Shown here: positions 13,352-56,158 of the stretch, one piece after another
How the letters are laid out: every line of letters starts with the position of its first letter
Numbering within the stretch: the stretch's first letter is position 1
Assembly: GCF_037042905.1 (NCBI RefSeq)
Contig: NC_087258.1
Span: 2,604,001 to 2,668,000, forward strand
DNA from: Lytechinus pictus
Taxonomy: Eukaryota
DNA: 64,000 bases
Direction of reading: 5' to 3'
Made by a program: the position numbers and the translations under genes
Notes under the pieces: model-generated
What the model saw: the letters and a program-made list of their open reading frames with translations, nothing else
Told to the model about the DNA's origin: nothing
Databases searched by the model: none

Positions 13352-14406
13352 CTAGAGAGGAAAAAATTAGAGACAATTTTTTGATTAACAATTTCTCTCT
13401 TTAAATATTGGTGAATACTTCATTACAAGGCATATTCTCATTGTGATCTACAAAATGCTAAATACCTAGAGAGAGAGAAATTTTTTTTTGAATGATTTCT
13501 TAATTGGCAAATTTTACTGGAAATATTGGTGAATACTCCATAACATGTTCTCAGTGATCTATAACTAGAGTAATGAATACATACACAATACAAAAATCAC
13601 AAATCAGAAGTAATTTCATGATCAACACTTCCTCTTTGGAAATTTGGTGAAGGCGGACCTTCAGGTAATAAGATCACGTGGTGATTAGATGAAACAAATT
13701 ATCCTAATTGGAGATTCCCAAACTTGAAATTATACCACGTAGTTTTACACCAATAAATGTATAAACCTTATCTTTATACATGTACATATGCCTTAGATAA
13801 GGCCGGGGTAATAATATTGATAACAACGCACCTCGGAATAGGATATATCTAGATAGATGGCGCTATATAAATGCCTATCATTATTATTATAAGCATTTGA
13901 CCTTTGTAAATTCCAAACATTTGTATTTGTATTCAATATACTGTATCCTAGGATACTCTGCCATTAATCTTGTTATCTGTATTTTGTGCTTGCATCATCC
14001 TTTCTCTTTCTGCAGGATGGGAGCCTTTATCTATTCAGTCATATTCTGTAATGTTATAATTTGATTGCACATGTATTATAATAATAATAATAACAACAAC
14101 AATCAATGATAATAATTTAATTCATTAGGCCTGAATAATTTTTTTTTTTGACTGGTGCCTGCCCGGGATTTTATCATTCATAGCCTTTGGCGACACTAAA
14201 TTTCTTATGGATTTGTTTATATTAGCAGGACACCGGTCTGGACAAATTTGCAACGGTGACAGCCATCGTCGAGCGGGCACCGGTGGACCGCACCTTTCAA
14301 CTCGGGCCTAGAATTCATAGACAGGTGGTCCTTATATACAATTGGTCTTTCTTAAAGGTGTTCCTTCTATGTAGGTGGCCATTAGAGCAGGTTTGACTGT
14401 ACTTAC

Positions 14407-14518
14407 TCTCCAGACGGCGCAAGCTCACAGATGTCAAAGTAAACTAGAAGGTCATGTTTGGAATGGAGATGACTGGTGCTGGCTGGTGTACTGATCAAAC
14501 CCATCCTTGGAGATGGAA
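14407..14518 (-). CDS. KIF1A/B (unc-104): Exon 20 (PSPRMGL...HDLLVYFDICELAPSG)
   Basis: ttttag|...GA|gtaagt; 112 nt, phase 1-2. Confidence 0.94.
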
Positions 14519-15297
14519 CTAAAAAAATGAAAAAAATGAGAGGACAATACGATGAGTTCATCAATTCAAGATAATTGACCATAATTTGTAGTTTGACCCA
14601 ATAACTCTTGAAGGAGAAGCATCAAAATCATAATATACATTAGGGACCCGTTTCATAAAGATACAATTTTGTAACTAGCATGGATTTTCATTGGCTGCTG
14701 AGTACTATGGTTGCCATGATGGCATACAAGTAGATACATGTACTGCATGGAAAGGGCACCAACGAAGATTGTACACAATCTGAGCCTATTTTACATGCAT
14801 CAGTAATTTGATCTTTAATTCTATGGTCAAGAATTTGTTAATGAAAATGATCACTACAATGGAAATGCAATACATGTATGCACATTTTGAAAATGTCAAA
14901 CTTCAAGAAATAAACTGTCTTTCAATCTTTAGTTTAATATAAGTTTTATTTTGTTCTTTTTAGGGTCAGCAACTTTTAAGTCCCCCATTGGACTTCTCAT
15001 CTGATCCTCATCCATATATTTATTTATTGACAATATTGTATATTGAAATAATTGTCATTCCTAGTATGTCTGATATGCATGTGTACACATACTGTACATG
15101 TACTATACAGCTTACTTTCAGTTTGGGATCCAAGATTTAGAAATTTAGCTAAAAGTATATATACCAATATGTATCTTCAATGGGTGATTATCAAAATATA
15201 AAGGGGGCACACATCCCCTCACGTCCCTGCCTGGATCCAACAGAAAGAATAAATATATAAAAGAAATTTTAAATTGACCGAGGCCATAATACCTTAC

Positions 15298-15350
15298 CTG
15301 GTGTGGCCATAGGAAGTGTGCATGGGAAACTCCTTTTAAGAGGTCTCAAC
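15298..15350 (-). CDS. KIF1A/B (unc-104): Exon 19 (LRPLKRSFPCTLPMATP)
   Basis: attcag|...G|gtaagg; 53 nt, phase 2-1; compare KIF1A LRPSRRHFPRVMPLSKP. Confidence 0.9.
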
Positions 15351-15510
15351 CTGAATGAAATAAAATAAGTAAAGATAAGTATATGAATATCAAAATACAG
15401 AAACATTAAAAATTGATAAAGATTTGAGGATATACATGTATAGATACATTAAAAACATAGTCATATGCATGTAGTAATCATATACTGTCATAAAAAGGGT
15501 CATTTAATTC

Positions 15511-15976
15511 AATAAGCCAGTTCGTAGTTCCTTTCTGCTTATAATCAAAAGATTCTGCGCATGATCAGAGGAAGGTCATTGGTACTATGTAAAGTGACAT
15601 GGTGGTTTAAAATTTAATGAGATAAGCACCAACTTTGATGTCTTGATTATTCATATATTCTTTTGAATTGTGTTTTTCATATACATCCACAAAAAACAAC
15701 AATGCGTCCACGAACGACTGGTATTTCACAGTTTGCCAAGTACAATGTACATTGTGCAACATGCTATAATATGCATTCAAGGTAGAAATGCAACAAATAC
15801 CTTCATAAAGTGTTCATTGAAGTGCTATTCTAGTCACCTGGTCTATTCAATTTCTTCATCCTGCTATGTAAGGCATGCTTACGTAATATCTTGCTTTGAA
15901 ACCTGCTATCACAATGAAAGAAATGAAAGGTCATTTGACCAGAATTGTCCATGAAGTAACTACGAACTGGTCTATT
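15511..15976. mobile_element. MITE with TIR AATA(A/G)(G/A)CCAGTTCGTAGTT
   Basis: Terminal inverted repeats at both ends. Confidence 0.7.
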
Positions 15977-16105
15977 GATTTATCCATCCCTATTGTACAG
16001 TAGCAAAATTTCTGCATGTGGACTTTGAATCGTCCTGTTTCATACTAACTATGGCAAAAAGAAGCTGAAAAAAGAAGCTGCTGAAAACTATGACAGACAT
16101 AATAC

Positions 16106-16224
16106 CTGGTGGTGGTCTGACTCTGGGTGTGTAACGGATGGGCTTGGTAATGACCAAAGACCTCAAACACGATTGGTGATGTCCTCAGGTAGTCAATGAA
16201 CGCCCTGGTGACGGTGGTTGATAT
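16106..16224 (-). CDS. KIF1A/B (unc-104): Exon 18 ([39 protein letters not shown])
   Basis: ccccag|...AG|gtatta; 119 nt, phase 0-2. Confidence 0.95.
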
Positions 16225-16492
16225 CTGGGGGTACCAATCACAGAAAATATCAGAGAAAAGAAAATAGACATCAAATAGAAAATTACTGAATACATGTATG
16301 TATATTTATTTTTGATAACTTATTTCAGAAAGTGTGATCTGACTTGGTTTTGATAATTAAAATACCAGTTTCGGATCATGCTTGCTTTAGTTATTCTACT
16401 TAATGAGGTTGTAATTACAAAATTGCTTTTAAAGGGACATGAATTTGAAAAATTACTCATGAAATATGTTAATTTTGACAAACTACATTTAC

Positions 16493-16739
16493 ATTTATAA
16501 AATATGACCTACTGTAGGTCATATTTTATAAATTTTTGATGATTTTGATGATACATGTACAAACCAAGTTACAGTACATGTAGGCTACATGTAACTTGGT
16601 TTGTACATGTATCATCAAAATGACATTTTCAGATCATGCTTGATTTGGGTAGAATATTGAATATAGTTGTAAGGATCACCCAAGGGAGAGAAGAAAATCT
16701 GTTTTCATGTATTACAGGTACATGTACCTGTAATACATG
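16493..16739. repeat. Cluster of three perfect palindromes / inverted repeats
   Basis: 16493-16533 (20-bp arms), 16542-16621 (32-bp arms), 16706-16739 (17-bp arms). Confidence 0.92.
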
Positions 16740-17950
16740 TTTAATACATGCACTATTCAAGGGACACTTAACATGTGGTCTTTAGACAAATGGTCTTTCT
16801 GTGCAGGTGATCGTTGAAGACTTGGCAACCACTTGTTTTTCAGTGAATAATTAATATAGTTTGTGGAGTTATGGGAAATACATGTACTAGAAGGTTTCTG
16901 AGAAGTTATATTACAAGATATTGGTTTCTTCTTGGTTTTATACATAAAACTGATTTGCTCTCGGTTGCAAACGATTCTACTAGCAATAAATTAAATGATT
17001 TACAATTGATACAGGACCTAGAATTGACTTGCTATTGATTTCAAACAATGACCTCTATGTTTGAATTGCCTATCTTTCAAAAGTAATATCGCTTCTATAA
17101 CCATATTCATATAATATATCAAGACATTCATATTTCTTTATACAAAGTGATGGTATAGTGTGCATGGGTTAACATGCAAACATGCAAGTATACATGTACA
17201 TGTATGTATAAATACATCTAGTGCAGCAATGACACAAGATAACTTTACAAGTACAGTATTCATCAGAGGAAAGAAAATGGAACATTCATTTTGCATTTCC
17301 CTTACAAATTTAATGCCTTTGTTTCATTAAGGTATAAAACCTACAAATATTGATTTTTTATTTTGCATGTCATGTCAGAACACATTAAAATGAATGATAA
17401 TACATGTATAAAGCACACAATTAAAAGATGTGATCCAATAACTGACACATCTGTAGTCTGAAATCTATATTGTTATTAAAAGCTTTAAAACTGATAGGTT
17501 TAAATAATATTCTTAACTCAGGTCCTATAATGCCTATAATGTACATGTGTAGATTTTTTTAGGGTGAGGGGATGGTACAGTAAATGTACTTTGAACCACT
17601 CCATAAAAAAGGATTAAAAATGGATTAAAAATAATTATAAATAATTATACAATCTCTCAGTAGCTTTGGGACAAGTATTGTAACCGACTTATATGATGTG
17701 TGTCTAGAGAGAGGTTTATCAATAGAGGGCGACAGATGTGATCTACACGTAACAGTCAATTTGAAATTTCATGACAAATCAATCCATGAACGACGACATA
17801 ATGGAACTGATACTTTACACATACATTTCACTTCAAAGTAAAATAAGTCTTTTTGCAAAATGAAAACAATAAGCAGCTGCAAATATCTGTAAATCAGAAA
17901 AGCATACGAAATGAAGAGTGCTGAACAGAAATGTTAAAAACCCAACTTAC

Positions 17951-18053
17951 ATCTTGTACAAAGTAAAAGCCGAGGGGCATACCGGACCGGCCCGAATAGT
18001 GACTGTGATTTTCAACCGATTGAGTAACAAACGCCCCTTGACCATGTAGCAAG
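17951..18053 (-). CDS. KIF1A/B (unc-104): Exon 17b (LLHGQGAFVTQSVENHSHYSGRSGMPLGFYFVQD); mutually exclusive variant b
   Basis: ttttcgctcgctttacag|...|gtaagt; 103 nt, phase 2-0, open; homologous to 17a (AFxT..., GFY/F.V/IQ). Confidence 0.82.
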
Positions 18054-19214
18054 CTGTAAAGCGAGCGAAAACAAAACGTTTGAAAATAAAAAAATCAATC
18101 TTTTGCTCAAACTTTTGTTTAGACAGCAGCACAATGAAAAAGAGATTTTAAAGGAAATAAAAGTAGAAAATTATATTTGCTGAAGTATATACGAGACATG
18201 AAATTGAACTTAAATTTAGAAAATGGATGCTGGAAAAAAATTCCTAGAAATCTCACTTGTATCTCTTAAGGATTCAACATTTTATGGTAAGATATTTCAT
18301 GTTTCTTTTAACAACCTTCCAAACAATTTAGTCCAGATAGACAGATGTTTTTTCTTTCTCTTTTACTTCAGGTGGGGGATTTAAATTGCATATTATTTTC
18401 CTCAAGACCAAAAACTCCTAAAGATCCTGATAAAAACACATTGAGAAAAAGTGGGGTAGTGGAGTAAAATTAATTACAGGAAATCAAATAAGAAATACAA
18501 GCAAAGTATTGTTGTGAGCAAAATGCAAGTGACATGTCCATTCAATCCGCATACAAGAATCGCCAATCAAATACTAGGAAGAAACTGTATACAAAATAAA
18601 ATGTGAATTCAATTTACAAGAAATAAATGAATGAACATTCAAGATAAAATCAAGGCAAAATCTGTAAAAGAAAATAAAATGACTCTAATCTCTCCTCATC
18701 AGTGCTCAAATGATTGTGTAGATTTTCCAACCATTGACAAAATTACTTTTCCCCAAACATCGTGTGATTCGAAAGAAGAGCATAGATTCATTCAACGACA
18801 CCAATTTCATTAATGAACCCAAAAAATCCCCGTAGATTTACCATGGTATAGCTTGCTCCAAGATTTTAAATCCCACAAAGGTTTAGTGCATGGTCTGCTC
18901 AACAACCAGTTTTAATTTCATGTTATTCTTTTTTTTCTCACTGGAAATACAGACTGCCAATAGGACATTGGTTTATTTAAAGTCTTCTTTGATCCCCTCT
19001 TCAAAATGTTAACGCCAATAATTTTGAAGTTTAATTGTTAAATTTTACCTTTAAATGTTATGTATCCGAGATTAGATGAAGAGAAATAAGAGTCAAAATT
19101 AAACATGACAAACAAAAATATTCCATAGGCCTGTTTTGCAAATGCTGGGAGTTGTTCAATGAGTTGCCGTGGTGATGGGGGTGGGGTTTATCTGAAGTTG
19201 CTTGCTGGACTCAC

Positions 19215-19302
19215 GTTCTGTATATGAAAGAAACCCATACAACCACTGCTGGAGTTTTTCATAGGCTCGGTGGAAAATGCCTCATCCCTTCTGTGTAGGA
19301 AT
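19215..19302 (-). CDS. KIF1A/B (unc-104): Exon 17a ([29 protein letters not shown]); mutually exclusive variant a
   Basis: gataag|...|gtgagt; 88 nt, phase 2-0; close to KIF1[17 protein letters not shown]...GFYHVQN. Confidence 0.93.
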
Positions 19303-20590
19303 CTTATCAAGGCACGGAACGGTGAAATGAAAGTGATTACGTCAGGATAAAAAAAAATAGGGGGACTTTGACCCATTGGTTACTCAGATTGTATTCTTAG
19401 ATAGAAATATCCAATAAAGAATGCATGACTGTAAAAAAACACTACTGGCAGGATTCCTAATAAAAAAGGGGTTGTGATTTTCTGGGTTCTTTTTATAGGT
19501 GCTTTGTGCTTGCTGATTGGGCTTGTTTCATTGTATAATTAAGACAAACATTGCTTTAATCTGAATAATCTGTGAGTTAAACCATAGCAAAAAGAATTAA
19601 TAAATTTTTTTGTAAGGCCTGAAATATTCATATGGCCTACAAGTACATGTGTTAAGTGTTCATACTGAACTAATACAATGAAATCTGCATATTAGCTAAA
19701 TAATGGGTTTGAAGTTTTCCCACCTTTGTGAGTTTAAGCCATAATAACTGAAAACACGGTTACATACAATATAATGAATTTGATTCCATTCCAAACTTAA
19801 CAGAGATTCAATGATATGTGGATGGAACGATTTAACACGAAAAAGGTATACTGTAAATGTACATCATAAATATATAACTACATTATTTTATACTCTATTG
19901 AAAAAAGAAGACAAAGTACATGACTTTTTTATCGTATTGAAGAAGTAAATATGAATTTTCATGCCTATCTTTTCATCATGAAATAACTTTTTGAGAAACG
20001 AAGGGAAGTTTTCGATAATTGAAAAGTCAAGTTTTATCATTAATAAATAGGATAAAAATATAAGGATTATTGAAAATACATAAACTTATTAATTTTATTA
20101 TATGGGGCAGAATCCAGAGGTTGGGACTGGTGGCCTTTTCACAAAACTGTTTATGAAGTTACAAACAACTCTATGATCATCATAAGTATGGAAAGTGAAA
20201 TTGTACTCCCAATAATCATTTCTCGATTGAGCTAAATTTAAGGCATACGGAATAAGATTAATATTACCATTGAGAACAGAAGATCATAATGTGAAGTACA
20301 TGTATATTTCTTTTTGCAAAATCAAAATGAGATTATTAAAGATACAGTCACAATTTATTAAGCCATTAGAATAATTTTTGATAAGTTATACTGTACATGT
20401 ACATGTATATTAATTAAGATACCGATACTTGAAATCTAAATGTACTTCTTTTTTGTAAACTGAAAAAGATAACTAAAGTTCACTATTGCGGATTCATAAT
20501 TGGTTTTGCACCGAGTGGTCATGTATCACAAGGAGGACTTATTATCAGAAGCTGTGACCATAGAATCGTAAGAATGGAGACATTGCTCAC

Positions 20591-20774
20591 TTGAACTGGC
20601 AGAAGATGTCGGAGTATTCCGTTGATATCCCAGAGGCCTGTAGCACCGTGACCCGGAAGGTAAAGTTTGACCCAACCTTCAGATGGTCAGCATCACATGC
20701 ATCGAGTGTCGAGAGGGATGTCATTGATTCGGTGGTGCTCATCGCTTCAACGTCGTGACACTTCTCTTCCAAGT
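20591..20774 (-). CDS. KIF1A/B (unc-104): Exon 16 (LEEKCHD...[32 protein letters not shown])
   Basis: gtgtag|...AA|gtgagc; 184 nt, phase 1-2. Confidence 0.93.
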
Positions 20775-21368
20775 CTACACATACATGTAGCAATAATGGA
20801 ATAGCACATTATATACAAAATTAAGAAATAATGATTATTCATGACTCCAATAAGTGGATCAACTTTTGAGCTCAATATATATATGTGGTAGTAGCATATA
20901 AAAAGTATGAAGAGGGCCCCATGTCTGCATACCAAACTATTTAACCTAAAATTTAACAGGAATTTCTTTTTACTTCACAAACAAATTTTGGTTGATAATG
21001 AAAATTCATTATTTTTCCACCATTTTGAGTCAGATTTTTAAAAGAATATCTTTCTATGTATTGCAGGTGTAAAGTTTGTGGTTGCTGCGTATCTTCGTTT
21101 ACTAGAATCATGAAGATACACGTGTGGGCAGACAAGGGGGACTGCGCAGACTTGGGGGACTTTACCATACATGTAGCTGTGGCATAAGTATCAACAGTCG
21201 ATGTGATAGATGTAGCTACAGTATACATGTAGGTACATGTATTAGTGGTTGTCTTTTAAAGCTGTATACCAAATCACTAAAACCACAGTAGTTAATGATA
21301 TGCCCAGACTTACGATGACAAAATATATGCTTGAAAAATGTATCACTAGTCACTGTATCTTATCTTAC

Positions 21369-21471
21369 CCATGTCTGAGTTTTCTCTGTGTCCTTCCACA
21401 ATACGCACGTTCTCCTCTGACATGCTGGAACGACAGATTGCCTTGTTGATCCCGGAAGGAGTTCTTTTCAG
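21369..21471 (-). CDS. KIF1A/B (unc-104): Exon 15 (LKRTPSGINKAICRSSMSEENVRIVEGHRENSDM)
   Basis: tatcag|...G|gtaaga; 103 nt, phase 0-1; RIVEG matches KIF1A EELRIVEG. Confidence 0.9.
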
Positions 21472-22301
21472 CTGATATAAATAAAGAGAACAATCTTAGA
21501 TTGTATTCCTTCAAAGATAAAGGAAGAAGTTTCAATGATGACATATTTGACCATTATCTCAAGACTAATTAATATTAAAATCAGCAAAAATTGATGTTTA
21601 TTTTTCTGTAGAGACAAAACATGCAGATTGTAAGGCATAAAATGACCCAATTTTTCTTTGTGAATTGCTACATGTACTTTAATGCTTAGCATGATCATTT
21701 CAAAACAAGGAAAATGAATACCACCTTCCCCCCTCTTCCTCCCCTGCCCGTTCACCCTCACTTCCCCTTCTCTTGCCTCTTCCCCCTTCCTTCAACCTCC
21801 CTCAGCTTCTGCCGCTTACTTTCCCCCTCCCATCTTCGCCGTTACCACTGACCTGTATTTTTGGCCATGTTGGACTGTCTGACCCATTCCCCCTTCCCAT
21901 CTCTCCCCTCCGACAAACAATCCATCCATCACCTTCTCCCTCTCAACCTTACCCCCATCTTCTTGTTGAAGAATTCATTGTCATTGAACTGTATTTTGGC
22001 CAGACTGCCTAACCTGAACCTGTTCCAATATAATCTTCCCCCTTCCCAATCCCTTTCCCCTGTCCACCTTATATCTCCCCTCTTGCTTGCCTGTGCTGAG
22101 TAGCATAGCAGTAATCCCACATTAAGGCACCATGCATCTTTTCATTGGAGCATTTCTGCATTCCCCATTTCTTTGTCTATGATGAAGAATGATAATTGGC
22201 AATGAAAGACCACTTGTGGGGTTTCCATTTGAAAGATGCAGCTCTTGAGTTTTGAAAAGATAGTTACCTATTTCTCCCTCCCTTTCCCCTTTCATTCTCA
22301 C

Positions 22302-22512
22302 CTTCTTGTTAAAGTATTCATCATCATTGAACTGTATCTTGGCCATGCCGGACTGCCTGACCCCTGACCCATAGTCCGGTGTTTCATCGTCCGGTAGGAC
22401 GTGCTGGACAGCGATGCGTAGATAACCTTTGACATCCCCCTTCTCGTTGACGATGGCAACCCGATGAACCAGAGGAACGGGGTAGAGCAAGTTGCTCATG
22501 TACACAAAGGAC
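22302..22512 (-). CDS. KIF1A/B (unc-104): Exon 14 ([21 protein letters not shown]...[14 protein letters not shown])
   Basis: attcag|...|gtgaga; 211 nt, phase 2-0. Confidence 0.96.
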
Positions 22513-22634
22513 CTGAATGCAAAGAACATGATAGTTATAAATAATAATGAGGATGATGATGAAGAAGATGAGGATGATGGTGAAGAAGGCTATGATGGCT
22601 ACGATTAGACTGAGAATTACAGTACAAGACATAC

Positions 22635-22781
22635 CTTCCAACGAGACGGAACCACGGAAACCGATCGTAGAATGGATCCCTGCACGTGCCGCTGTTTTCA
22701 AAGCCCATATTGCCATCAGGACTTGTAGGCGTGGCATCAGCAGCATTGTCGTACATCTCTCTCATCAACTCCAGTCGCTTC
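22635..22781 (-). CDS. KIF1A/B (unc-104): Exon 13: KIF1B-type stalk motif ([10 protein letters not shown]...[14 protein letters not shown])
   Basis: gtacag|...AG|gtatgt; 147 nt, phase 2-2. Confidence 0.96.
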
Positions 22782-23176
22782 CTGTACATCACAACAACAT
22801 CAAGCAACAATATCAAAACACAGATTGTATGTGTATATCAGGGTCAAACTTAACAGAATATGATTGATGTGTAACAAGTCATCTCTGAAAAGAAGAAAAC
22901 GTCTTTAAAAATAGCTTGTATAAAAATCATTAAATATTTTTATCATAAATTTGACAGTTACGGTAAAAACCAATCTCTTATTTGATATGAGACTAAATAC
23001 ATGTAATTAGTGAATCGTTCATGCATCATACATGTAGAGTGAGATATAATGGTATTACAATAGTGATAGCCAAATACCAAGTGATATTAATCCCAATACC
23101 AAAATCAAGTTCATCGTTGTGACTGGTGGTTGAGTCGCCTCAACGCTAACACCAGCAGTGGACACTTCATACTCAC

Positions 23177-51998: not shown

Positions 51999-52209
51999 GG
52001 GGGTGTTTCACAAAGATTTAAGTATGACTTAGAGTCGCACTTAAATGTCTATTTGCGCACGGTATAAAAGGCATGACAGCATTGGTCAGATTATGCCAAG
52101 AAGACGCGCTCTACTGCGTATTGTCCAATAAGATTGCGCGTTGCATATCATGTGCGCATCGGCATTTAAGTGCGACTTAAGTCATACTTAAATCTTTGTG
52201 AAACACCCC
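51999..52209. mobile_element. Young MITE with near-perfect TIRs of about 50 bp
   Basis: GGGGGTGTTTCACAAAGATTTAAGTATGACTT / AAGTCATACTTAAATCTTTGTGAAACACCCC; CTG/CAG flanks. Confidence 0.88.
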
Positions 52210-53354
52210 CAGGTGCAATCCTACTCGGCGTCTTTTTCTTTACACTTCAGCATAGACAAAACAATGGGCGACTGGGACACTGCTAGGAAATTCTGTATTC
52301 AGTAAGGCAATGACAAGACTCTGGATTGAACATCACAGTTCATAAGATGGCCACATCAGGTGAAATCCTATTCAGTGCATTTCCCTTTGCAATTCTCCCA
52401 TTCCAGCAGATAAATAAAATGGGGGACCCATGTACACTGCTTGAAAATTCTGCATGCAGACAAGACTTGCAATCGATGCCTCAGTGTATTCATCAGGTGG
52501 CCATAATAGGTTGTCTCCTGCTCTGCATCTTTTACCTCGTGATTTCTGCCTCTAGATGAAGAAATGGAAAAGATGCTGGGGAAATCCTGCATGCAGTAAA
52601 CCTTTACTTTTCAATAGGACCCTCAGTGTATTCATCAGGCACCCATATCAGCATCGTTTCCTTCCCAATTCTACCATACCAACATAGACTCACAAAAAAC
52701 CCCAATGGGGAATTGAAAAAAAAAACACTGGAGGAATCATGCAAGAGGCAGCTGCCATTAACAATTTAACATCATTATTAATGCCAGGGTAAAAGTATTG
52801 TCCATTTTGGGATAGGTGTATATGATTGACTTTAAGTCCGTCGACAAAACAACTCCCAAAGAGAGAAAACATTATTCCAGAGGGGAGGAATCCTACAACC
52901 ATTGCACAAGCAATGTGTACAAATTCAAAAAGTTTTCATTTCACAACTACAATTCATTCAGTTTATAATACAAAGCCCAGATCAACAAGCAATGTCCTGA
53001 ATGAATGTTTTTAGCTGTTCCTTGAAGAACATTACGGGGCAGTGTAGTCAGCCATGCTGGAGAATGAAGCAGAAGAAACAAGCACATAACTTATCATAAA
53101 CATGAGGGAGGTGAAACAAGAGACAGGAACGTCCAATATTGGCAAGTGTGAGCGGAAGCTGGCCATCGAGGGCCTCCTTGACGTGACTCAGAAAATGACA
53201 GAGGGTAATTAAAGATACCAACATGACCTAGCTCCAGGGGAAAACAGATAATATGGGTGGGAGCTAGGTGGTAAACAGGATGAGAAACCAGTAAGAAAAA
53301 TATGAGTAAGAGTCAGATGGAGAAGGAGATACAGATGGGTAAAACTAGCAGGTG

Positions 53355-54690
53355 GAGATGTAGAAGTAGTAGATGTAGAAGTAGTAGATGTAGAAGTAGT
53401 AGATGTAGAAGTAGAAGATGTAGGAGTAGTAGATGTAGAAGTAATAAATGTAGAAGTAGTAGATGTAGAAGTAGTAGATGCAGAAACAGTAGATGTAGAA
53501 GTAGTAGATGCAGAAGTAGTAGATGTAGAAGCAGTAGATGTAGAAGTAGTAGATGTAGGGGTAGTAGATGAAGAAGCAGTAGATGTAGAAGTAGTAGATG
53601 TAGAAGTAGTAGATGTAGAAGTAGTGGATAGAAGTAGATGTAGAAGTAGTAGATGTAGAAGTACATGTAGAAGTAGTAGATGTAGAAGTAGTGGATAGAA
53701 GTAGATGTAGAAGTAGTAGATGTAGAAGTACATGTAGATGTAGAAATAGATTTAGATATATAAGTAGTAGATGTAGAAGTAGATGTAGAAGAAAAAGATG
53801 TAGAAGTATTAGATGTAGGAGTAGTAGTAGTAGATGTAGAAGTAGTAGATGTAGTAGTAGTAGATGTAGAAGTAGTAGATGTAGAAGTAGTAGATGTAGT
53901 AGTAGTAGATGTAGAAGTAGTAGATGTAGTAGTAGTAGATGTAGTAGTAGTAGATGTAGAAGTAGTAGATGAAGAAATAGTAGATGTACTAGTAGTAGAT
54001 GTAGTAGTAGTAGATGTAGTAGTAGTAGATGTAGAAGTAGTAGATGAAGAAATAGTAGATGTAGTAGTAGTAGATGTAGTAGTAGTAGATGTAGAAGTAG
54101 TAGATGTAGTAGTAGTAGATGTAGTAGTAGTAGATGTAGAAGTAGTAGATGTAGTAGTAGTAGATGTAGTAGTAGTAGATGTAGAAGTAGTAGATGTAGT
54201 AGTAGTAGATGTAGTAGTAGTAGATGTAGAAGTAGTAGATGAAGAAATAGTAGATGTAGTAGTAGTAGATGTAGTAGTAGTAGATGTAGAAGTAGTAGAT
54301 GTAGAAGTAGTAGATGTAGTAGTAGTAGATGAAGAAGTAGTAGATGTAGTAGTAGTAGATGTAGAAGTATAGTAAATGTAGAAGTAGTAGATGTAGAAAT
54401 GGTTGGGGGTTGAAGTAGTAGATGTAAAAGTAGTAGAGTAGTAGATGTAGAAATAGATGTAGCAGTAAATGTAAAAAAAAATAGATGTAGAAGTAGATGT
54501 AGATGTATCAGATGTAGGAGTAGTGGTAGTAGATGTAGAAGTAGTAGATGTAGAAGTAGTAGATGTAGAAGTAGTAGATATAGAAATAGTATGGAGAAGT
54601 AGTAGGTGTAAATTAGAAGCAGTATATATGAAGAAGTAGTAGATGCAGAAGAAGTAGATGTAGAAGTAGTAGATGTAGAAGTAGTAGACA
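53355..54690. repeat. 15-bp minisatellite (AGAAGTAGTAGATGT)n / (AGTAGTAGTAGATGT)n
   Basis: About 1.3 kb tandem array, visible directly; source of the spurious LHLLL/STSTT/RCRSS ORFs. Confidence 0.97.
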
Positions 54691-55748
54691 GATTGAGTAT
54701 ATGAGGTAGATATACAGAATGTATAAAAAGGAAGTAGATGTAGAATTCCATAGCAAATCTATTAGAAAAAAGGAGTTGTAAAATCAGATGTTCAAGTGAA
54801 AGATAGAGAAGCAGTAGATGTAATAAATTCAGAAATATTAAATGCATCAAAGAAAAGTAGACAGCGTAGATTTTTATCACCTTTACCCCCCCCCCCCTCT
54901 CTCTCTCTTTCGTTCTTTCTTTCCCTCGTGCACTATCTCTGTTGAGCTCTAAGCAGCCACGATCCCTAATATAAGCTTTGTAAACAAGATGAAACAATCT
55001 GGAAGGTTTGATTATCATATTGAACCAAGCCTGACAGGGGAGGCTGATCCACAGTGGGACGCCGATGCGCTGGAAAACAAGTGAAACCACATCTCAAAGC
55101 AAAATGTCAATACGTTCAAATAGAGGCAGCAAATTCAATCTGTTGAGAACCTGAGAGTGAGCTGGGTGTGGGAGAGTGATGCAGAAATGTGAATTATATT
55201 CCAATGGGAGTGGGAGTGAGTAAAAGATAGCATGAGAGAGTGAGAGAAAGTGAGAGAGACAGACAGATTACAGAAAGAGAGAGAGAGACAGATGGAACAA
55301 AGAAAGGAAAAGAAAGGCAGTAAATTCAATCTGTTGAGAACGTGATAGTAAGCTGGGTGTGGGGGAGTGATGGAAAATCTGAATTATATTACAAAGGGAG
55401 TGGTAATGAGTGAAAGAGGAAGAGAGCAAAATAGTCAGATAGATAAATAGATAGACAGACAGACAGACAGACAGATAGATAGTTAGCAATAATTAACAAC
55501 AGATAATAATAAGATGTTGTTACAGCTCATAACAAAGACATCAATCAGGAATTGTGACAAAAGGGATGGAAAACAGCAGAGAATAAAGACCGATAGAGAT
55601 TTGAAAAAATGAAATAAGATAATGGTAGAGAGACAGTTCACTCCCACATATAGTTTGGTTGATAAATAAACATTATACATTTTTAATTAAATATACATTA
55701 AGAAAAAAGATTCTGGATTCTCCCAAAGATACATGTATAATACAAATA

Positions 55749-56158
55749 CAGACCTGCCAACCTCTGTATTCCGTGATACAAAAAATGTATTTCCCCCCAA
55801 AAAAGTGTATTTCATAATAAAATGCTTGGTGCACTCGCCCATCACGGCGCTCAAGCTGCATGCAAGCTAGAATGCGCACTGCTCTTGCAGATGAAAAAAA
55901 AAACCATTGAAACTTGTGTATTACAAAATGATTGAAAAAAAAAACAAGTTACCTGAAATTACATTGATCTAATAACCATATTTGTGTACGTTTTATGAAA
56001 TAGAGACATATAGAGATGATTTTTCTCAATAAATTACGATTTTGTAAACAAAAAACGTACTTTAAAGAAAAAACGTATTTTAAAGAAAAAACGTACTGCC
56101 ATATTTTGGTTGCAAAAACGTACTAAATACGGCTAAAACGTACTGGTTGGCAGGTCTG
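55749..56158. mobile_element. Non-autonomous hAT-like element with 6-bp TSD
   Basis: TIR CAGACCTGCCAAC/GTTGGCAGGTCTG; TSD CAAATA; subterminal AAAACGTA repeats. Confidence 0.85.

Follow-up and report, generated by a model that had tools for sequence, protein, structure and literature searches.

A tandem pair of homologous, probably mutually exclusive exons in the tail of a sea-urchin kinesin-3 gene

Animal genes offer well-known examples of tandemly duplicated exon pairs in which mutual exclusivity is imposed by the reading frame and by nonsense-mediated decay. In insect Dscam and 14-3-3 zeta, the choice among mutually exclusive exons is controlled by a docking site and selector sequences. Among motor proteins, the tails of the kinesin-3 family determine the choice of cargo and the switching off of the motor, and little is understood of the beta-rich tail region that lies between the coiled coils and the PH domain. 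A literature search for a mutually exclusive exon at the place considered here in KIF1A, unc-104 or kinesin-3 found none described.

The present analysis concerns two homologous exons, 17a and 17b, in a kinesin-3 gene of the sea urchin Lytechinus pictus, contained in a stretch of 64,000 nucleotides ('the window', positions 2604001-2668000 of contig NC_087258.1). The locus shares with the frame-enforced pairs the presence of adjacent homologous exons of equal phase, each 3n+1 nucleotides long, one with strong and one with weak splice sites, and both with conserved flanking introns. It differs in that transcript support was obtained here for 17b only and in that the default exon is the divergent copy rather than the ancestral-looking one. 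With Dscam and 14-3-3 zeta it has in common a conserved intronic element between the variable exons and a predicted complementarity beside the upstream constitutive exon, but no covariation is found, the predicted pairing overlaps the 5' splice site itself and its statistics are no better than nominal. With KIF1A, KIF1B and unc-104 the gene shares the Kinesin_assoc and DUF3694 regions, exon-by-exon tblastn matches and the borders of exons 16 and 17. However, every other kinesin-3 sequence retrieved carries a single canonical exon-17 peptide, and in vertebrates the tail is diversified by three paralogous genes whereas there is one gene in this genome.

The host gene and the anatomy of the two exons

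The window is occupied by a minus-strand kinesin-3 gene, most of which lies inside it, with the start of the motor and the end of the PH region falling outside. Searches by tblastn with moth unc-104 (P0138) and Ciona kinesin-3 (P0128) returned approximately 20 colinear exons, from 58749 down to 140, and the match to moth unc-104 covers residues 266-1477. Pfam matches on the exons of the window are to Kinesin_assoc and DUF3694 and, from Pfam and the colinear tblastn matches taken together, the order is Motor, Kinesin_assoc, FHA, KIF1B, DUF3694, PH, as in the KIF1A/unc-104 type. In the whole assembly (812 Mb, 368 contigs), a profile of the exon 16-18 module, which includes the window's own rows, matches only exon 16, 17a, 17b and exon 18, and no haplotig or paralogue that could serve for allele comparison was found in the genome. 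By these sequence comparisons, the gene is a single-copy kinesin-3 of the KIF1A/unc-104 type. An Rfam scan of the window gave no match. The whole window contains 355 N, and a stretch inside the large intron region of the gene (52000-56000) shows a strong GC skew of 0.28-0.43 and harbours a 581-aa open frame (53345-55090, minus strand) without a Pfam match.

The positions of the exons, and of the conserved intronic segments discussed below, are collected in table 1. The coordinates, peptides and phases of 17a and 17b given in the original prediction were found to be right as written. The two copies differ in the quality of their splice sites: 17b combines a CAG acceptor, preceded by a strong pyrimidine tract, with a GTAAGT donor, and 17a has purines immediately upstream of its AAG acceptor. 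Exon 15 is supported by an RNA loose end at 20775 that maps to 21370-21399. The loose end at 16104, at the border of exon 18, maps to exon 19, with two bases (GT) that can be assigned either to the exon 18 donor or to the start of exon 19. Exon 19 was missed by the homology search and was revealed only through RNA loose ends.

Table 1. Exons and conserved segments around the 17a/17b pair (window positions, except for the two homologues on the contig of the second sea urchin, L007).
Feature	Position	Strand	Length	Description
Exon 15	21369..21471	-	103 nt	constitutive, upstream; splice sites read in the sequence
Exon 16	20591..20774	-	184 nt	ends ...DIFCQF plus two bases; donor gtgagc; RNA depth
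Conserved block around 17a	19335-19069	-		17a with 33 nt upstream and 146 nt downstream
Exon 17a	19215..19302	-	88 nt	3n+1; acceptor ...gataag|A (weak AAG); donor AAC|gtgagt; canonical-looking
17a downstream intron flank	19069..19214	-		aligns with L007 at approximately 72%
Mid-intron element, non-coding	18512..18713	-		detected by blastn and MAFFT against L007; one copy in the genome; top-conserved core 18545-18508
Conserved block around 17b	18140-17921	-		82% identical to L007; 17b with 87 nt upstream and 30 nt downstream
17b upstream intron flank	18054..18140	-		holds pyrimidine tract and acceptor; a 20-nt run upstream of the tract identical in L007
Exon 17b	17951..18053	-	103 nt	3n+1; acceptor ...tttacag|C; donor GAT|gtaagt; divergent copy
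Exon 18	16106..16224	-	119 nt	constitutive, downstream; RNA depth and joints
Exon 19	15298..15350	-	53 nt	RNA loose ends map to 15319-15348; splice sites read
17a homologue on L007	1687-1774		88 nt	acceptor ataag|A; donor gtgagtc; 20/29 residues identical
17b homologue on L007	3027-3129		103 nt	acceptor tatacag|C; donor gtaagttggg; 33/34 residues identical

In-silico splicing agrees with the expectation that the use of both copies, or of neither, breaks the reading frame: 16+17a+18 and 16+17b+18 both stay open, 16+17a+17b+18 meets a stop inside 17b and 16+18 meets a stop in exon 18. The two open products, from exon 16 to exon 18, differ by 15 nt. It had also been noted that the list of open reading frames shows 17b only in a wrong frame, which holds with a cut-off of 60 aa but not with one of 45 aa, where the correct frame is listed (17894..18052).

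The kinship of the two copies is well defined, with 12 of 28 residues identical (z=5.5, 1 of 5000 shuffles reaching the observed score). When the exon-17 peptides of moth, Ciona and a bird were searched against positions 14000-23000, they matched both 17a (E approximately 1e-11) and 17b (E approximately 3e-4) and no third copy, and none was returned genome-wide by the module profile. Only 3 of the 12 identical residues share the third codon base, and synonymous sites between the copies are saturated. In a comparison with 28 kinesin-3 exon-17 sequences, where 18 columns are at least 90% conserved, 17a departs from the family consensus at 7 of 27 columns, just one of them among the conserved ones (hypergeometric P=0.0017), and thus keeps 17/18 family-conserved residues. 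The departures of 17b are at 12 of 26 columns, with six in conserved columns (P=0.24), and this copy carries a five-residue insertion. Alignment bears out the view that each copy retains a different canonical part, a ten-letter half in 17a and the PLGFY.VQ half in 17b. Many animals have exons 16 and 17 with identical borders, as judged from genomic ORF fragments. In one animal contig (L002:1397-1487, Logan ERR4677225) exon 16 starts with LEEK, as in the urchin, and is followed 240 nt downstream by one canonical exon 17; the contig ends there, and a second copy is possible.

Transcripts and conservation in a second sea urchin

RNA data from the same organism consisted of three raw rRNA-depleted RNA-seq runs of 2026 (X6-X8) and of small contig sets (X1-X4), of which X6, X7, X8 and X1 were mapped to positions 15950-20900. 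The joint of exon 16 with 17b (18053|20591) was found in 1 read of X6, in 10 reads of X7 from six start places and in one 677-nt contig of X1, and that of 17b with exon 18 (16224|17951) in 2 reads of X6, 5 reads of X7 and the X1 contig. Thus, the junctions foreseen in the original prediction for 17b, 20591->18053 and 17951->16224, were seen exactly at the predicted sites. Both introns have CT..AC ends, that is GT..AG on the minus strand, and the first mates map to the plus strand, the orientation that a stranded library should give for RNA of the minus strand. The coverage of X8 was limited to exon 18, with three reads. 17b is therefore an exon in use, and the dominant one in the sampled RNA.

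For 17a, depth was zero over bins 19104-19435 in all four sets (X6, X7, X8 and X1), with 0/18 junction reads at low coverage; given this low depth, these samples may still include it at levels of up to roughly 15%, and its inclusion may be high elsewhere. A joint between 17a and 17b (19215|18053) was not seen in the same four sets.

The RNA differs from the genome at 20611, 16174 and 16162, in exons 16 and 18, and all these differences are third-position synonymous changes. At 16174 both G and C are observed, giving four alternative bases over three sites, and the alleles of X8 differ from those of X7. In the intron after exon 18, a stretch of 33 nt (15951-15983) reaches a depth of approximately 290 in the X1 contigs, is present in both orientations in X6-X8 and has loose ends at 15979 and 15983, which suggests a fragment of some abundant transcript or repeat that originates elsewhere.

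A second, related sea urchin was reached with a small profile on a Ciona scaffold to which the urchin exons had been added as rows; this profile returned two urchin exon-16 ORFs with 91-92% identity, one on a 32.9 kb ENA contig and the other on a 3698-nt Logan contig (L007, run SRR28370579). An earlier profile search on a moth scaffold had found non-echinoderm fragments only. L007 (dS approximately 0.65) provides the only second species compared. Both exons are present in it, with the same lengths, phases, open frames and splice sites, including the AAG acceptor of 17a. Nei-Gojobori estimates were obtained for the four exons. For exon 15 (91% aa identity) dN is 0.038, dS 0.423 and dN/dS 0.09, and for exon 16 (95% aa identity) the values are 0.022, 0.806 and 0.027 (Fisher test for omega<1, P=1e-12). 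For 17b dN is 0.013, dS 0.665 and dN/dS 0.019 (P=5e-7), and for 17a 0.168, 0.645 and 0.26, respectively (P=0.009). Protein change in 17a is faster than in the neighbouring exons (P=2e-4), with a non-synonymous rate approximately sevenfold theirs, and several family-invariant residues have been lost from the L007 copy (H to Y, R to G, E to D and F to Y). No indel is found over the 88 nt of 17a, in contrast with the several in the adjoining intron. By these estimates, 17a evolves faster yet is still constrained, and 17b is by far the more constrained of the two copies (0.02 versus 0.26).

The saturated synonymous sites, together with two copies that are intact and under purifying selection in the second sea urchin, support the proposal of an old tandem duplication with both copies maintained. 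From the sharing of third bases and the presence of both copies in two species, the duplication would be much older than the split of these species, and both copies appear to have been kept as coding sequence since it occurred. Of the two findings that would have spoken against the pair, namely that 17b is never spliced and that it is not conserved, neither is borne out. Note that it is only from conservation that we infer mutually exclusive use and any tissue or stage specificity.

The surrounding introns and the encoded module

Most intron sequence cannot be aligned between the window and L007, and exons 15 and 16 have no conserved flanks, at most approximately 20 nt being alignable on each. 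The flanks of 17a and 17b, and the mid-intron element that separates them, stand out from this background (table 1). Alternative exons that are regulated can usually be recognised by long conserved flanks. A cluster of YCAY motifs (five in 45 nt, in the top 0.5% of windows on the strand) lies downstream of the 17a donor, at approximately 19186-19158, and is largely kept in L007. In vertebrates, YCAY clusters downstream of an exon are Nova-type neuronal enhancers, but as a control site for 17a the urchin cluster can be taken only as a lead. No UGCAUG site lies near 17a, and in the 4.9-kb region only distant ones are found. Four UGCAUG occur in this region against 0.8 expected from a mononucleotide shuffle, in a setting where CATG is generally enriched, and two of them, 8 nt apart, are at 17178-17191 (minus strand) in the intron downstream of 17b.

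Intronic RNA pairings of the docking and selector type were also sought. The longest helix, between 19095-19075 and 18700-18680, has 20 of 21 pairs, of which L007 keeps 17/21 with three two-sided changes. However, dinucleotide shuffles of this AU-rich region give a best helix of 19 pairs on average, with 20 attained in 24 of the 60 shuffles. For the core of the mid-intron element, the predicted energy of pairing with the region of the exon-16 5' splice site is -20.1 kcal/mol in Lytechinus pictus (-10.4 ± 2.9 with shuffled targets) and -15.2 kcal/mol in L007 (-7.9 ± 2.2 with shuffled targets), these being values for one of eight targets tried. The pairing arms of the core are invariant and the registers differ between the two species; this pairing is therefore, with no covariation, a candidate only. 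Complementarity to 5' splice sites is present within the core. Inverted repeats, AT-rich and numerous in the region, are unremarkable. With two species, the candidate pairings are not distinguishable from chance.

As to the protein, exon 17 sits upstream of Pfam DUF3694, which begins at exon 13350-13198, and no Pfam family covers exons 16-18. An AlphaFold2 model of the moth homologue (P0138:1075-1420; 61-row alignment; mean pLDDT 64.6) shows five strands and two helices in residues 1-106 (pLDDT 60-89). Exon 17 corresponds to model residues 41-70 (pLDDT 60-75), which comprise the end of strand 32-41, strand 44-50, loop 51-62 and most of strand 63-74. By alignment, the insertion of 17b falls in this loop. 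Folding of the exon 16-18 module by itself yielded a model of low quality (pLDDT 57), and the module may lean on the domain that follows.

Foldseek returned generic sandwiches only. A VIA-align comparison of residues 2-97 with all PDB representatives gave residues 749-839 of KLP-6 (7wrg_B; Z 6.2, rmsd 3.8 over 90 residues, 21% identity), the C2A domain of rabphilin (Z 5.5) and the PI3KC2a core (Z 5.5), all below the noise level of the tool, approximately 8. A MATH domain of the KLP-6 type was defined here as an eight-stranded beta sandwich with short helix caps placed after the MBS region, and a C2 domain as an eight-stranded C2 beta sandwich. The MATH domain newly found in KLP-6 includes residues 838-839, its residues are stated to be conserved in KIF1A/B, and the roles proposed for it are self-inhibition (with the MBS domain), oligomerisation or adaptor binding (PMC9314371). 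The moth-modelled module aligns with KLP-6 749-839 (PDB 7WRG; PMC9314371), but the match is within the range that the tool calls a common arrangement, and a sequence profile search does not find 7WRG. On the basis of these models, the module between the KIF1B and DUF3694 regions is probably the counterpart of the KLP-6 MATH domain. Of the beta-rich, C2-like fold originally suggested, the beta-rich character is supported by the model, the C2-like assignment is supported weakly (Z 5.5, the KLP-6 MATH domain scoring higher but also weakly), and MATH-like is weakly the better lead.

Alternative explanations and biological meaning

The explanation that we consider probable is that 17a and 17b are a true and old tandem-duplicate, mutually exclusive pair enforced by the reading frame, with 17b as the default exon and 17a as a restricted alternative. 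Exclusivity would follow from the 3n+1 length of each copy, because with both or neither the frame runs into an early stop, and transcripts of these two kinds would be removed by nonsense-mediated decay or give a truncated protein. With its strong sites, 17b would be the default in the sampled tissues. The AAG acceptor and the upstream purines suggest that 17a probably depends on an activator and that its use is confined to a certain cell type or stage; the conserved intron flanks, the YCAY cluster and the mid-intron element would be candidate controls. The swap would exchange one beta strand, the loop after it, to which 17b adds five residues, and the greater part of the strand that comes next. 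If these belong, as is probable, to a MATH-like module, it would alter a surface for self-inhibition, oligomerisation or adaptor binding. The parts of this scheme that we infer are that 17a is used and that decay takes part, together with the regulators and the consequence for function. The roles are the reverse of those that the canonical look of the exons would suggest, the divergent 17b being in use and the ancestral-looking 17a being the probable weak-site alternative.

It could be argued that 17b has simply replaced 17a, being now constitutive, and that 17a is a recently silenced relic, a pseudo-exon that has yet to decay. The zero depth of 17a in four RNA sets, its weak acceptor, its high non-synonymous rate and the invariant residues lost in L007 are all in line with such a history. 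However, 88 nt evolving neutrally at a dS of approximately 0.65 should show a dN/dS near 1 together with indels or stops, whereas 17a has a significantly lower ratio, no indel and both splice sites kept in two species. Moreover, the substitutions of the Lytechinus pictus copy avoid conserved columns, and the 146 nt of intron downstream of it are conserved while the flanks of constitutive exons are not, making silencing of 17a unlikely. Still less probable, and in fact very unlikely, is a role of 17a as a regulatory poison exon that would be included with 17b to lower the output of the gene through nonsense-mediated decay. The stop that 17a+17b produces inside 17b fits this proposal, and exons of this type, too, typically have conserved flanking introns. 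Against it, a poison exon needs no conserved peptide, but 17a retains nearly all the family-conserved residues and its changes are biased to synonymous sites, and the 19215|18053 joint is absent from the RNA sets.

A distinct question is how the choice between the exons is made, and here competition between intronic RNA pairings, with a docking site and selectors, may be set against splice-site strength and protein factors as the sole determinants. The pairing of the core with the exon-16 5' splice site beats shuffles in both species, and the 21-nt helix preserves most of its pairs in L007 with two-sided changes. On the other hand, helices of 20 pairs are the norm in shuffled sequences, the core arms are invariant with registers that differ between species and emerge from eight targets, and the AT-rich inverted repeats of the region are unremarkable. 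Such a pairing-based choice is thus judged rather unlikely, if slightly less so than the silencing of 17a.

Two versions of two strands and one loop that have been kept by selection mark a surface that probably matters, and the 17a and 17b isoforms provide a matched pair for binding and autoinhibition assays. The locus also illustrates a pitfall of gene models, for a homology-based prediction would choose the canonical-looking 17a and the RNA shows that 17b is used. Finally, and much more tentatively, one may conceive that a single sea-urchin KIF1A-type gene yields two motors with different versions of two strands and a loop in a MATH-like tail domain. The lineage-specific 17b form would be general, and the ancestral-type 17a form would be turned on by the conserved intronic elements in a restricted cell type, for example neurons, so as to retune self-inhibition or the choice of adaptor. 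This is a possibility that we regard as less likely than its converse but, if true, the 17a/17b swap would do within one gene the job that vertebrates split among KIF1A, KIF1B and KIF1C.
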